Assembly: GCF_006345805.1 (NCBI RefSeq)
Contig: NW_021833450.1
Location: 1 to 64,000, forward strand
Reading direction: 5' to 3'
DNA: 64,000 nucleotides
From: Octopus sinensis
Taxonomy: Eukaryota
Shown: positions 4,385-54,522 of the stretch, piece by piece
Numbering within the stretch: position 1 is the stretch's first letter
Layout of the letters: each line of letters starts with the position of its first letter
Made by a program: the position numbers and the translations under genes
Notes under the pieces: model-generated
What the model was told of the DNA's origin: nothing
What the model saw: only the letters and a program-made list of their open reading frames with translations
Database searches by the model: none

Positions 4385-4910
4385 TTACATATATATATAT
4401 ATATATATATATATATATAATATATAATATATATATATATATATAATATATATATATATATATATATATATTATATATATATATACATATATATACATAT
4501 ACAAACACATACATGCATACATACATACATACATACATATATACATACATACACATACACACACATACACACACACACAAACACACATATATATATGTAT
4601 ATATATATATATATATATATTATATATATATATATATATATATATATATATATATATATAGCACAAAACGGCGGTGCATCAGCATGGCCGCAGCTCTGAG
4701 CTGAAACTAGAAAAAATATATATATGTATGTATGTATATATATACATGTGCATATGTATTTATATATATATATATATATATATATGCACATACAACATAT
4801 ATATACGTATATATATATATATACATGCATGCATATATATATATATATATATATATATATATATATATATATATAGATAGATATATATGATATGTATATA
4901 TATATATATA
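4385..4910. repeat. Compound (TA)n/(TACA)n microsatellite at the outer left breakpoint
   Basis: Directly visible. A similar compound tract lies at 53840-54290, at the outer right breakpoint. Confidence 0.95.
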
Positions 4911-5100
4911 TTATGCATGAATAAAAATATCTTTGGATGCATTTCATTTGAGAGGTTTGCATTTAATTTTAATTTCTTATATGTATATGAATATTTTATT
5001 GGATCAGTTAATGTCTGGAGAATGTGTTGTGTACATTGTTTCGCTGTGATTCTTTACAGTATGTGTTGTGTAAAATGTAAATATTTTATTGGTCGGTGAT

Positions 5101-5107
5101 TATATAG
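5101..5107 (+). promoter_or_regulatory. Possible TATA box of PAN gene A (mirror copy at 53617-53623 on -)
   Basis: TATATAG inside the near-identical upstream block, ~550 nt before the ATG. No TSS evidence. Confidence 0.25.
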
Positions 5108-5654
5108 GGAACTATTTGAGATGTACGGCTAAATTGAAAGTGTCTTGCGTACCACGTGGGCCAGGTTTAACTGGATCATCTTTTGAACTGAGAATATCGT
5201 TGATATGGCTTTTACTTGTACTTCAGTCATATCGTTTTCAAATTCATACCTGATTCTTGTTCATTTTAAATTCATGGATCGTGAATATTGACAGTTTCCA
5301 CATCTCTCACCAGGAAATGTTTTTGCAAAAAGTAATTGCGATATCAATCTGAGTACAAATATTATTGTTTCATTCTTTGATAAATTTATCCTTGTACGAT
5401 TCTTTTTGATATCTTTGTCTGTCATTTCCCCGATTGTGGTCAGGTGGTTATTATGTATCGTCTTTGATGTTTTATCCCTCCTAACCGTTCTTGTCTCCAA
5501 ATGATGGTACATGATCCAGTGGACATAGATTCCTTCTAAGAACATAATTGGGTTTGACAAGGAATGGATCAGCAGTAAGAATGTGGTCAACTCTCGCATT
5601 ATATTTTTATGGTGATGATGTGGTGGTGGTCATCGTCGTATTTATTATCGAATT

Positions 5655-5700
5655 ATGCATATAACACTTCTCTTTCTTAATCTTTTCGTCTTTAATGTTT
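5655..5700 (+). CDS. PAN gene A exon 1: signal peptide MHITLLFLNLFVFNV, phase-1 donor
   Basis: ATG at 5655, 15 hydrophobic codons + 1 nt, donor GTAAAT at 5701. The phase fits exon 2, and the exon is identical in the right arm. Confidence 0.75.
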
Positions 5701-49575: not shown

Positions 49576-51931
49576 TCACTCTGCCTGTATTAGTTCGAAA
49601 TAATGAGAATAAAATACGGGGAAGAAAAAGAAAAAAAGGGAAAAAGACGGGATCTGTCAGTTATTATTGTTATTACTATCACCTTCACCACCATCACCAT
49701 CATTAGCAACATCACCATCACCATCATCATCATCAATGATATTGTTTTATGTGTAGCCACAGCCACCATCAACACTCCTACTGCCATTGTGTGGGAGAAT
49801 GGTTGGTTAAAGAATTCATGCTATTTGGGTCTATAAATAGATTCGGCAGATGGTGGAGACAAAGGACGTTAATGGTCAGTAAAAGGTCAAACCTGTTTAC
49901 ATTTATTTATTTAATTTCCTTTTTCTTTTCTCTTTTCTTCCTCTTCACATGCATATGTATATGTATATGTATATTCACTCACACATATTATCTGATGTTT
50001 TCGTCGATGATTTTTTTTTTTTTTAAACTTTCTGAGTTCAATGTTATGTATATATTTTTAAATTTCTGAATTCAGTTGTATGTATATAGTAGTAGGTGCT
50101 TAATTCCATAACTTTTTATCGTGCATTTAATTGTGTTGTTACAATAAAAGGTAATTTAAAAGGCAATTTTACACATTCTTATAGTCATGAGAGACGACTA
50201 AATGTAAATGTTCACACAGAATTGGAGATATTTATGTTTCTAATTTTTCTTGTTAGGTGTACGTTTGTATGAGCTGTAGATATGTACGTTTTTAAACTTA
50301 TTTTGAGGGAAATTCAAATTACTCACAGAAAACAGTAGATCTTCCAGTTTTCTACGGTTGTTTTTTTCAGTTGTCCTGCTGGGTTCGCTGTTGCCAATAT
50401 TATTATTATTATTATTATTATTATTATTATTATTATATTATTATTATTATTATTATTATTATTATTATTATTATTAGCAGTAGTAGTAGATTTATTTCAT
50501 TTTCTAATTTTCTAATTGAAAGATATATGGGACCTCGAACTAAACTCATGCCATAGACTGAGTGGCTGCAACATTTGGAGCGCCGGAACGCAAGAGTCAC
50601 AGCAGGAAATATTGATGTTTGTTAACTTACAGAATAGGACGACGTGGCGATTGCTGGTGAACTTAATTCAATGAAAGTTTAATATTCACAAACAAGAAAA
50701 GACAAAAAGAAAACTAACAAGAATATTTTACTGCAAAATAAATGAATACACTTTCGAAATATTAAGTGAGATTTATGCGAAGGACATCATTGCTAGACAT
50801 AGCGGTTCTAAAGATATGTTTAACAGATCCCGATCAAAATACTGACAACAGCACACAAACAAACACACACTCAAACACGCACACACCCACGCACACACAC
50901 ACACACACACACACACACACACGCATACACATGCACGCGCACACACACGCACACACACTCGCACACACACACACACATTCTCTCTCTCTTACGCCTTCTC
51001 TCATTGAATCTGACTCGTACACGCAGACATGAAGATATTTTGTTTAAACTAAATAATTCTGTTTATTTTGAATTTAGTAATGGAGGCAACGAACCCAGCT
51101 TACAAACGAAAAATATTGTATATGAAGCGTTGGATTAGCAAAGTGTACGGCGTAGAACTAAAAAATAATAAATACAACGTGATTGATTTTCATCTGAAAC
51201 AATAAAGCAAGCGAGAGAAAAGAGATGGAAGGAAGAAAGAAAGAAAGAAAGAAAGAAAGAATGAAAGAAAGAAAGATAGAAAGAAAGAAAGATAGAAAGA
51301 AAGGTGATCAGAATTGTGAACAATTTTGATTTGATCCAGGTTGAGGATTTTCATTCGTTTATGGATGAGTTACCCAATTTGGTTCCAAATTTCTTCATTT
51401 TATACGTGAAAAAAATTAAATCTGTGTTTCACACATTCAGTTAATCTTCTGTAATTATTTTACGTAATTTAAGTAAAACTCGTATCATATCCTCATATAG
51501 TGTAAGATATCTTTTCGTCTCCCTCACAGACTAATGTCATCTACACACAATTTATATATTACACCCCAGACATGCATTATTTTCATCATCAAAGATATTG
51601 AGAATATTTACTGACAGTCACGTGACGAAAACGTTCTCTTTCACTGAACCTAAACACACAACCTTTTGACAAAACGTTGCCTTTTCTCTTTTCTCTTTGG
51701 TAATCTCGTGTCTCAATCCGAAATTCTGTGCTAAACGCATCAGTCAAACCTTTATTAGAACCACCACTCCGGAACAAAACTATACAATAATTCTTCAACA
51801 CACACCAATCTACATAGACTAGAGAAATCGCAGCAACTTTTCAAATGCTGACAGTATTGTCTCTCTTTAGACTAAAACATAGAATACAAGTGAAGGAATG
51901 AAATAAACCCAGAAGATTCAAATTTTTTTAC

Positions 51932-52189
51932 CGTCTGTATAATTGGTCGGCACAGATCTTCTCAACTGATAAAAATCGGTATTAGTTGCGCCTATTAGCA
52001 TTTTCTCTGTTGCGTCATCTTTGTATAAAATACAGCTTGGACTTATCGTTCTGCTCACGAAGGATTTACATGCAGAAGATTCAAAACACCTCTTCGAACA
52101 GTCGTAGGCATCCACATCAAGTGTCATCAATGTTTTACCTTCCTTGAGAAGACAGTTTCCTACTTTTATAAAATAGTTCAGATGTTCAA
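51932..52189 (-). CDS. PAN gene B exon 2: PAN/Apple-like domain 1
   Basis: ctttgttacAG acceptor and G|GTAAAA donor, 258 nt. Encodes CSKRCFESSACKSF...SCILY; paralogue of 6353-6610. Confidence 0.88.
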
Positions 52190-53022
52190 CTGTAACAAAG
52201 TCAGGAAAATTAAACAACCAAAGTACGAAGACGAAAATAAAAGATTTTCGAAATAGATAATATAAAGAGAGAGAATATTAAATGTTTGACGATCAATACT
52301 GATATTTTTACCAGGAAGAAGTGATAAATTTGTTACTACCATAATGTAGGGATAATTAATCCATTCTATTATTTAAATGATTCATATGATATGTTCTGTA
52401 ATGTTTTATGCTTGTGTATTGTAAAGTTTGCCCGATTATCAGAACTTAATTTTAATAAAATGCCTACAAACTGACGAAAAACTGAAATACAACGAGTACG
52501 AAGAGCTTACTTTCAGAACCACATCTATGCCTCTGAATGGCTTTTGAGTAATTGTTAATAGCAACAACTTGAATATATCTGATTTTGACTGGAATACTAA
52601 GATTCGCCTCCTGTCTATGTAACATCTATCCCAGTTTGACTGAAAAAAATTTCACGTGCGTGAAATTACAGATTGTATTTTAATGGTTATCATGAAACCG
52701 ACCAAAGATGCACTTATATTGGTTTTGAAAGTAACTCCTTATTATGTTAAGAATTGAATTCACCATCATACGGCTGTTTCGTATTGAACTAAAAATTATA
52801 AATTTTCTTTTCAACAAATTTATTTTGAGATGGAACATATTTTCCTATACTGAACTTATAAATTAAATTTTTGCATTCTGATTTTTCATAATTTTCATAG
52901 ATATTAATATAAATCTACTCACGTCCATTTCCAAATGTCAATGAGATGTAGAAGAGAACTGCAACGAAAATTTATTTTGTAAAATATTTTATATTCCATG
53001 TCCACGTTTAACATTAATTTAC

Positions 53023-53068
53023 AAACATTAAAGACGAAAAGATTAAGAAAGAGAAGTGTTATATGCAT
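53023..53068 (-). CDS. PAN gene B exon 1: signal peptide MHITLLFLNLFVFNV
   Basis: Identical 46-nt coding exon with GTAAAT donor on the minus strand. Confidence 0.75.
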
Positions 53069-54522
53069 AATTCGATAATAAATACGACGATGACCACCAC
53101 CACATCACCATAAAAATATAATGCGAGAGTTGACCACATTCTTTCTGCTGATCCATTCCTTGTCAAACCCAATTATGTTCTTAGAAAGGAATCTATGTCC
53201 ACTGGATCATGTACCATCATTTGGAGACAAGAACGGTTAGGAAGGGATAAAACATCAAAGACGATACATAATAACCACCTGACCACAATCGGGGAAATGA
53301 CAGACAAAGATATCAAAAAGAAATCGTACAAGGATAAATTTATCAAAGAATGAAACAATAATATTTGTACTCAGATTGATATCGCAATTACTTTTTGCAA
53401 AAACATTTCCTGGTGAGAGATGTGGAAACTGTCAATATTCACGATCCATGAATTTAAAATGAACAAGAATCAGGTATGAATTTGAAAACGATATGACTGA
53501 AGTACAAGATAAAAGCCATATCAACGATATTCTCAGTTCAAAAGATGATCCAGTTAAAGCCGGCCCACATGGTACGCAAGACACTTTCAATTTAGCCGTA
53601 CATCTCAAATAGTTCCCTATATAATCACCGACCAATAAAATATTTACATTTTACACAACACATACTGTAAAGAATCACAGCGAAACAATGTAACACAACA
53701 CATTCTCCAGACATTAACTGATCCAATAAAATAAACAAAATATATTCATAAATATATGCGAGAAAATAAAATTTAAAGAAAATTTGAAGAGAAACTATCT
53801 AATGAAATACAACCCAAAATATTTATTCATGCATAAACAATATATATACACACACATATATATACACACACATATATAAATACACACACACACACACACA
53901 TATATATAATTATTTGTATATTCATGTCTCTCTCTATATATATATACATATATACATACATACATACATACATATATACATACATACATGCATGCATACA
54001 TACATACATACATACATACATACATACATACATACATACATACATACATACATACATATATATATATACAGATATATAATTCAGTGTACATTTACACAAA
54101 CGAAGTGACCCTAGCAGGACACCATACACGCTAAAAGGAGCAGTCAAAGCCCAAACCACGGTTAAGAGTAATTTCGAAGGGAATGAAAAATAAAAACATT
54201 TTCAATAGTTAGCACTATATATATATATATATATATATTATATATATATATATATATATATATATATATATATATATATATATATGTACACATAAAATAC
54301 AACACACACAATATAATATATATACATGCATGTATATAATAAATGAAAACAGAAGATGGAATATACAAAGATATATTATTAATCACAACAATTGTTTCGA
54401 CATATCTAGCATCGACTCCTGTGTGTGTATATATAAAAATACACAACACACATTAATAGTAATGGTAAGACAGCAAAAGAATGAAAGGGAACTCGATATT
54501 ATGTAAATAGAGGAATTTATTT

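Follow-up and report, generated by a model that had tools for sequence, protein, structure and literature searches.

In human inverted low-copy repeats such as IKBKG/IKBKGP1 and F8 int22h, a functional gene is accompanied by an inverted copy that is incomplete or not functional. When homologous sequences lie in inverted orientation, exchange between them leads to gene conversion or to inversion, but not to deletion, and this may help such a pair to persist. According to a working definition of large palindromes, the arms are longer than 8 kb and more than 99% identical (PMC8327919). Here, an inverted pair of gene copies of Octopus sinensis was analyzed, which lies in a window of 64,000 nt (positions 1-64,000 of contig VCDQ01005557.1, assembly GCA_006345805.1; all coordinates given below are window positions unless another sequence is named). 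With 21,626 bp and 24,105 bp the two arms are long enough for a large palindrome, but their alignable parts share only 85.95% identity. Each arm contains a member of a family of putatively secreted proteins with PAN domains. The right member has an intact open reading frame (ORF) of 280 amino acids, while the left member is frameshifted twice in exon 6 and lacks an exon 1 within the contig. The locus is very likely an ancient inverted pair of paralogous units from an Octopus tandem array, which is decaying and undergoes patchy gene conversion, and not a device for keeping gene copies.

To define the geometry, low-complexity sequence was masked and the window was compared with its own reverse complement using BLAST. 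Six collinear, mirrored chains were found, which join the region 4716-26536 to the region 29736-54029 (Table 1). The identities were 75-94%, the E-values ranged from 0 to 1e-77, and the arm-arm matches are far above chance expectation. A preliminary description of the sequence had proposed an inverted duplication of about 49 kb at positions 4910-53835 with five mirrored reverse-complement blocks. The extent was borne out, with measured edges at 4911 and 53840, and the self-comparison yields six chains in place of the five blocks. At both edges the homology outside of microsatellites begins at one common motif, TTATGCATGA.TAAA.... The outer arm ends adjoin (AT)n at 4389-4911 and (ATAC)n at 53936-54066, in agreement with the TA microsatellites proposed before. 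The left outer boundary is hidden, because beyond the microsatellite there is only a transposon, in which the contig starts. Only about 7.1 kb (7,140 aligned bases) could be aligned between the arms, which is about one third of each arm, and the identity is 82.7% when gap columns are counted. The remaining two thirds of each arm are unalignable and consist of arm-specific retrotransposon and microsatellite sequence. Distinct retroelements were located in the left and in the right arm, as had been expected from the preliminary description. The noncoding identity between the arms varied from 61% to 100% over windows of 200 bp.

The length of the spacer, 3,199 bp, agreed with the proposed 3.2 kb, but most of the spacer turned out to belong to one of the two units. 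Three paralogous loci (L001, L002, and L006) follow one arm collinearly and then run on into the spacer from 29735 down to 27896, and L005 and the O. vulgaris locus L010 extend the match beyond 27896 to about 27545. The paralogs continue past the arm, and, therefore, the spacer consists for the most part of the downstream flank that belongs to the right copy (block S). The inner end of the left arm is a sharp breakpoint at 26536/26537 after ...GAATACCAGC. In a four-way alignment, the left arm (L), the right arm (R), L001, and L006 follow the same sequence up to ...GAA(T/C)ACCAGC at 26536. Beyond this position only L departs, while R, L001, and L006 stay together, with R leading into the canonical S. 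Thus, it is the left arm that bears the derived rearrangement junction. L001 (VCDQ01003107.1) is an O. sinensis paralog that is 2-3% diverged. It was also considered as a sister-species ortholog, but this was rejected because the window itself is from O. sinensis, and O. bimaculoides was used as outgroup for the timing.

The normal unit of the array consists of U (promoter and exon 1), the gene, D, S, and F, and the units are arranged head to tail. L006 on the O. sinensis chromosome CM016875.1 contains such units in the order gene-D-S-F-U-gene, and OX597830.1 of O. vulgaris contains three family genes on the plus strand. On its minus strand the window also contains a complete normal unit, i.e., F (62204-59362), U with exon 1 (58098-55043), the gene, D, and S. 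The left unit that faces it comprises only the gene and D. Head-to-head neighbors were found as well, namely P0002 (-) and P0007 (+), which are 34 kb apart on VCDQ01003107.1 (L001, L003), and P0012 (-) and P0013 (+) of O. bimaculoides (L011, L012).

The region 30,017,906-30,025,721 of O. bimaculoides CM046617.1 is collinear, in a single orientation, with positions 24447-33250 of the window. One high-scoring segment pair (window 25767-27093) crosses the junction 26536/26537, and the match goes on through x, S, and D_R to exons 6 and 5 of a gene on the minus strand, with the PAN2 and PAN1 exons located farther away. To the left of D_L, O. bimaculoides has an element resembling a short interspersed nuclear element (SINE), an N gap, and the tail of a plus-oriented exon-6 block. 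The order of the members is P0003 (+), the left-arm remnant (+), the gene at the position of the right copy (-), and P0013 (+). An intact right copy is present in both species. The comparison of synteny that had been suggested for related genomes thus retrieved the left-arm/spacer junction, the spacer, and the inverted right-hand gene in O. bimaculoides. In O. vulgaris the synteny search gave three head-to-tail genes and no ortholog of either window copy.

For an estimate of the age, four D-region sequences were aligned, i.e., both arms of both species (L_sin, R_sin, L_bim, R_bim). In the non-converted windows the identity was 87-90% between L_sin and L_bim and 90-91% between R_sin and R_bim, in contrast to 75-82% between the arms within a species. 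The ratio of paralogous to orthologous arm distances (Jukes-Cantor) was 2.3, and the split of the arms would thus be roughly twice as old as the split of the species. The latter has been dated to 13-34 million years ago (PMC10925132). The layout itself predates the split of O. sinensis and O. bimaculoides. The high age claimed in the preliminary description is in accord with an identity of about 90% for orthologous arms across species versus about 78% between the arms within species.

Gene conversion between the arms had also been proposed, and it does occur, but only in short tracts. The arm-arm mismatches are strongly clustered (index of dispersion 10.7), and there are seven exact arm-arm runs of 104-187 bp, compared to a longest run of 93 bp in 2000 shuffles. 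The tract 4986-5816 contains exact inverted matches of 187 bp (5215-5401 = 53508-53322), 122, 104, and 92 bp. Selective constraint was considered as a cause of the high-identity tracts and was rejected. Block A (4911-5700) is 97.5% identical between the arms, but its identity to O. bimaculoides is 90%, the same as that of the neighboring blocks. It is not extra conserved across species, and, therefore, exchange is a better explanation than constraint. In the tracts 25250-25650 and 26050-26536, R_sin is similar to L_bim (85-93%) and unlike R_bim (70-75%), which indicates that conversion took place after the species split and that left-type sequence was copied onto the right arm. Only in these two tracts is the identity within the species higher than that between the species, while the reverse is true elsewhere in the D region.

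The coding parts of the two arms are very unequal in their divergence. The arms are 88% identical in PAN1 and 77% identical in PAN2, and the synonymous divergence (dS) is 0.08 for PAN1, 0.49 for PAN2, 0.59 for exon 5, and 0.025 for exon 6. The ratio of non-synonymous to synonymous divergence (dN/dS) is about 2 for PAN1 (30 non-synonymous versus 4 synonymous differences) and 0.6 for PAN2, numbers that are too small for a claim of positive selection. Between the right copy and its positional ortholog of O. bimaculoides dS is 0.10 for exon 6 and 1.1 for PAN2, and the latter has an amino acid identity of only 38%. Throughout the family the mean pairwise amino acid identity is 75% for PAN1, 46% for PAN2, and 71% for PAN3. 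PAN2 is not orthologous even in genes at orthologous positions (dS about 1.1), and this, together with its low identity across the family, suggests that exon cassettes are swapped among paralogs. The PAN2 exons may thus be old, divergent cassettes that move within the family.

As had been proposed, the gene copies are convergent (tail to tail), with the left copy on the plus strand, the right copy on the minus strand, and the two stop codons 9.7 kb apart. A six-exon model with GT-AG introns was built from tblastn, inspection of splice sites, and alignment with the outgroup. A protein-level comparison of the ORFs of the arms was rejected as a means of finding exons, because every frame matches where the DNA is similar. 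Each arm has two clear PAN_1 exons, and single exons score 20.8-28.2 bits. The right copy has GT-AG borders at all introns and an intact ORF with a hydrophobic N-terminus, and its protein matches PAN_1 (Pfam PF00024) in three stretches with 61.6 bits (gathering cut-off 21.4). Residues 86-280 are 100% identical to the RefSeq product of LOC118761543 (P0011, 195 amino acids), and, therefore, the RefSeq model lacks the N-terminal part; it begins at an internal methionine of the PAN1 exon. The locus of P0011 (L007) is 100% identical to window positions 22329-62001. Comparison with homologs supports a full-length LOC118761543 product of 280 amino acids with a predicted signal peptide and two more upstream exons.

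In the left copy, exon 6 has two 1-bp deletions in comparison to the right copy, and the reading frame runs into a premature stop (...AYSTFPSNQIHISTL followed by the stop codon). Both deletions are also present in a second contig, VCDQ01003266.1. A targeted search for exon 1 of the left copy was negative in the window, and the sole exon-1-like sequence belongs to the right copy. The expected site of the left exon 1 is occupied by (AT)n, a probable Penelope-like element, and then the start of the contig. Taken together, the left copy is decaying, and the right copy is the intact annotated gene.

It had to be considered whether the structure exists in the genome at all or is an assembly artefact that arose from a chimeric join, from a fold-back read, or from the inverted joining of two haplotypes. 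In favor of an artefact, the sequence comes from an unplaced contig of the PacBio era that begins within a transposon, and the assembly contains redundant, near-identical contigs. The unplaced contigs of GCA_006345805.1 with family members occur as the pairs VCDQ01003107.1/VCDQ01003230.1 and VCDQ01005557.1/VCDQ01003266.1, and the members of the latter pair differ by about 0.05% substitutions plus 1-bp indels. Such paired contigs are redundant assemblies or haplotigs, and none of them is placed on a chromosome. VCDQ01003266.1 matches positions 22331-61998 with 99.7-99.9% identity, with 18 substitutions in 39.7 kb and without any difference at both arm-spacer junctions or in exon 6 of the left copy. 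Between the arms, in contrast, the divergence is 14-25% and the unlike transposon insertions amount to more than 10 kb, and thus the arms are not two haplotypes. In addition, the independent assembly of O. bimaculoides shows the same junction and the same orientation. A mis-join of haplotypes and a fold-back read artefact are ruled out by the divergence of the arms and the conservation across species, so that an artefact is hardly conceivable any more and is effectively refuted. The statement that the locus is no assembly echo was therefore correct. It is also improbable that the pair is a palindrome in the style of mammalian sex chromosomes, in which selection would keep the inverted layout because conversion preserves two working genes. 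The persistence of the structure since before the species split, the presence of conversion tracts, and the intact right copy in both species would agree with this explanation, and the Z chromosome of cephalopods may be the location of the family (unverified). However, the arms are 86% identical over one third of their length and not more than 99%, the conversion tracts are mostly intronic or flanking and not in coding exons, PAN1 and PAN2 are as divergent as described above, and the left copy is frameshifted and has no exon 1 in the contig. For the same reasons, the preliminary view of a maintained locus, in the sense that two copies are preserved, lacks support. The Z chromosome of O. bimaculoides is chromosome 17, "formerly chr20" in O. 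sinensis (PMC10925132). Family loci are found on CM046617.1 (L004, L011, L012), CM016875.1 (L005, L006), and OX597830.1 (L009, L010), and no source was found that maps these three accessions to chromosome numbers. Judged by the order of the accessions only, and unverified, CM046617.1 may be chromosome 17, and Z-linkage of the family is on balance the somewhat likelier case. A very doubtful extension would be that the pair is a selectively retained palindrome on an ancient cephalopod Z chromosome, with the decaying left copy as conversion partner of an expressed, fast-evolving right gene. The intron-1 tracts (up to 187 bp) would then let recombination flip the 48-kb interval and join the sole start-codon exon (at 55.2 kb) to either gene body; the functional part of this idea is speculative.

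Most likely, the pair originated when a single unit within a head-to-tail array was inverted, before O. sinensis and O. bimaculoides split. Inversion of one unit is favored because the flanking members in O. bimaculoides share the strand of the left arm, so that it is the complete right unit that deviates. As expected for an inversion within an array, members are head to tail elsewhere, and the flanking O. bimaculoides members are on the strand opposite to the right unit. Afterwards, the arms have diverged mostly freely, by substitutions, by independent insertions of long interspersed nuclear elements (LINEs), SINEs, and microsatellites, and by exon exchange with other paralogs, and arm-to-arm gene conversion has re-homogenised short tracts. 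The palindrome would be a persisting by-product of the array dynamics. One duplication event of 49 kb, as assumed at first, fits less well than two old paralogous array units, one of which was flipped. A less probable origin, which nevertheless deserves consideration, is that the right unit was duplicated in a fold-back (template-switch) event. In this case, replication would have passed through S-x and then made a reverse copy of G-D, the left arm, which paralogs later overwrote for the most part. The spacer continues the right arm as single-copy sequence and the left arm bears the derived junction, which is the classic signature of such an event, and the identity peaks beside the inner junction (95-97%). 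However, this peak is explained by the post-split conversion, and the arms are not uniform in age, as is evident from the ranges of exon dS (0.025-0.59) and noncoding identity (61-100%). Furthermore, the divergence of the arms in the non-converted windows of D is about double that of the orthologs, and the O. bimaculoides neighbors are on the strand of the left arm, which again makes the right unit the odd one out. Several points speak against the inversion of an old array unit or weaken it. A fold-back would produce an identical inner anatomy, and the second, reciprocal breakpoint with the displaced S block, by which an inversion would be recognized, lies beyond the available sequence. By our own reasoning, a one-step inversion needs extra deletions to give the layout of O. 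bimaculoides. The left gene body of O. bimaculoides falls into 5.8 kb beside an assembly gap, outside of the compared sequence. The 5' half and the exon-5 region of the left copy are 97-98% identical to L001, while the 5' half is only 84-88% identical to the right arm; in the PAN2 region the left copy is 72% and at the 3' end 84-92% identical to L001. The left copy is thus a heavy mosaic, and exchanges with third-party paralogs blur which of the tracts are truly arm-to-arm. Lastly, the left copy may not be dead, because its exon 1 could be located beyond the start of the contig.

Table 1. Features of the inverted pair and its surroundings. Counterpart, position of the matching sequence in the window.
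Feature	Position	Strand	Counterpart	Remarks
Left arm	4911-26536	+		21,626 bp; left gene copy and its downstream block D_L
Spacer	26537-29735	-		3,199 bp
Right arm	29736-53840	-		24,105 bp; contains exons 2-6 of the right gene copy and its downstream block D_R
Chain 1	4716-5991		54029-52743	88.3% identity
Chain 2	6005-7349		52485-51155	83.9% identity
Chain 3	13326-13891		38560-38028	74.7% identity
Chain 4	19704-20299		36094-35496	94.1% identity
Chain 5	21444-22958		33405-31919	76.3% identity
Chain 6	24500-26536		31819-29736	80.8% identity
High-identity tract	4986-5816		~53740-52907	intron 1 and exon 2; 97.5% over 4911-5700
High-identity tract	19704-20299		36094-35496	intron between PAN2 and exon 5; 96%; exact runs of 126 and 112 bp
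Post-split conversion tract	25250-25650		~31010-30610	arms 90-95.5%
Post-split conversion tract	26050-26536		~30220-29736	adjoins inner breakpoint; arms 93-97%; 132-bp exact run
Block x	26537-27549			matches only L005 inter-unit sequence and the orthologous region of O. bimaculoides
Block S	27549-29735			ancestral downstream sequence of right copy; two SINE-like copies inside at ~28055-28461
Block U	55043-58098	-		upstream flank of array unit including exon 1; beside right copy only
Block F	59362-62204	-		inter-unit block; after S and before U in head-to-tail arrays
Right exon 1	55214-55244	-		ATG, MLERNCLQII, GT donor; outside the inverted repeat
Right exon 2	52923-52958	-		remaining signal peptide
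Right exon 3	51932-52189	-		PAN1
Right exon 4	38280-38510	-		PAN2, hypervariable module
Right exon 5	33137-33232	-		linker
Right exon 6	32329-32519	-		PAN3 and stop codon; intact
Left exon 2	5765-5800	+
Left exon 3	6353-6610	+		PAN1
Left exon 4	13376-13603	+		PAN2
Left exon 5	21619-21705	+
Left exon 6	22402-22590	+		frameshifted
LINE-type retroelement, left arm only	7347-12210	-		RVT_1 ORF 9732-10178; followed by (TCT)n 12219-12983
1.6-kb insert, left arm only	22872-24499			1.35-kb repeat (also in L005, L010) and SINE-like element 24298-24478
~10-kb nest of LINE fragments, right arm only	39421-49538	-		in PAN1-PAN2 intron; RVT_1 ORFs 42894-43397 and 46680-47906
Retroelement	84-4339			RVT_1 ORF 1303-2022 (+); GIY-YIG ORF 3128-3475 (-); 117-bp inverted match 84-200 vs 4339-4222

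The repeats that were inserted into the arms are listed in Table 1. Related LINEs of the two arms, which are 81-84% identical (9776-12210 vs 43172-45498), are in direct orientation, and thus they were not copied along with the arms, but were inserted independently. One SINE-like repeat (about 180 bp) occurs frequently in the surroundings of the gene family (24298-24478, 28056-28236, 28292-28403, and many copies in L003). The copy at 24298-24478 is present at the orthologous site in O. bimaculoides and is therefore old, whereas the two copies in the spacer are absent from O. bimaculoides and are therefore younger. An Rfam search of the window, including the SINE-like repeat, gave no match. The retroelement at 84-4339 probably represents one or two Penelope-like elements in inverted arrangement, inside of which the contig starts. 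Long simple repeats were observed at 12219-13219, 41340-41576, 60449-60593, and 61901-62286. They comprise a (TCT)n tract (about 765 bp) with a CT-rich repeat of 57-68 bp behind it, a 99%-pure (ATT)79, (TTA)n, and (ATGT)98. The 10-kb LINE nest has a strong excess of T over A on the plus strand between 40 and 50 kb.

Further observations concern the gene models of other family members. The C-terminal tails of the O. sinensis models P0002, P0005, and P0006 match noncoding downstream or spacer sequence (25208-25390, 24447-24560, and 27549-27659), and these terminal exons are probably spurious. The O. vulgaris model P0010 joins exons of two neighboring tandem genes. The O. bimaculoides model P0012 has a long unrelated tail, and P0013 seems to be devoid of exons 1-3. 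A gene with an HSP20 domain is located about 8 kb downstream of P0007 (L003 51521-53135), and it may mark an edge of the array on that contig.

The homologs of the two gene copies are small proteins that are labelled "Apple domain-containing", and at the search depth used they were found only in Octopus. In the family alignment the invariant cysteines are C53, C57, C63, and C75 in PAN1 and C111, C138, C142, C148, and C160 in PAN2. Judged from the sequences, the proteins would form an Octopus-restricted family of secreted three-PAN/Apple-domain proteins. The literature search retrieved no paper on octopus Apple domains, and the family is previously undescribed. With other PAN/Apple proteins, i.e., the N domain of plasminogen and HGF, the apple domains of factor XI and prekallikrein, and the adhesins of apicomplexans and nematodes, the octopus proteins share conserved cysteines and PAN_1 matches, of which they have three. 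They differ in being small (about 280 amino acids), in the combination of a predicted signal peptide with PAN modules only, and in their occurrence only in Octopus at the search depth used.

The locus offers a well-resolved invertebrate case of a long-lived inverted pair of paralogs, with a junction that is common to two Octopus species, with orthologous arms that group across species, and with clear conversion tracts that arose after the species split. In addition, it reveals the three-PAN family, the middle PAN exon of which is hypervariable and apparently swapped, and leads to a gene model of LOC118761543 that is corrected to full length. Should the array be located on the Z chromosome of cephalopods, one could start from it to ask whether this very old sex chromosome bears palindromes like those of mammals and birds.

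The palindromes of the primate and mouse X and Y chromosomes, e.g., P1-P8 on the Y and 26 on the human X, resemble the octopus pair in having inverted arms of more than 8 kb on either side of a few-kb spacer, one member of a multi-copy family per arm, arm-to-arm conversion, and conservation across species (PMC8327919; PMC8981503; bioRxiv 10.1101/800185). However, they are more than 99% identical over their full length and have kept both gene copies, whereas only one third of the octopus pair can be aligned, at 86% identity, its conversion tracts comprise a few hundred bases, and one of its copies is broken. The human repeats IKBKG/IKBKGP1 and F8 int22h are similar in another respect, i.e., a functional gene faces an incomplete inverted copy, and conversion and, in principle, inversion are possible. 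In contrast to the octopus pair, which is eroded and older than the species split 13-34 million years ago, they are young and about 99% identical. Head-to-tail arrays of fast-evolving genes for secreted proteins with occasional flips share the tandem members, the mosaic exchange, and the flips with the octopus locus, and no essential difference was found. Taken together, the locus is best classed as an eroded inverted pair of paralogs in a tandem array, and thus as a case of a known kind, which is similar to a palindrome only in short tracts.

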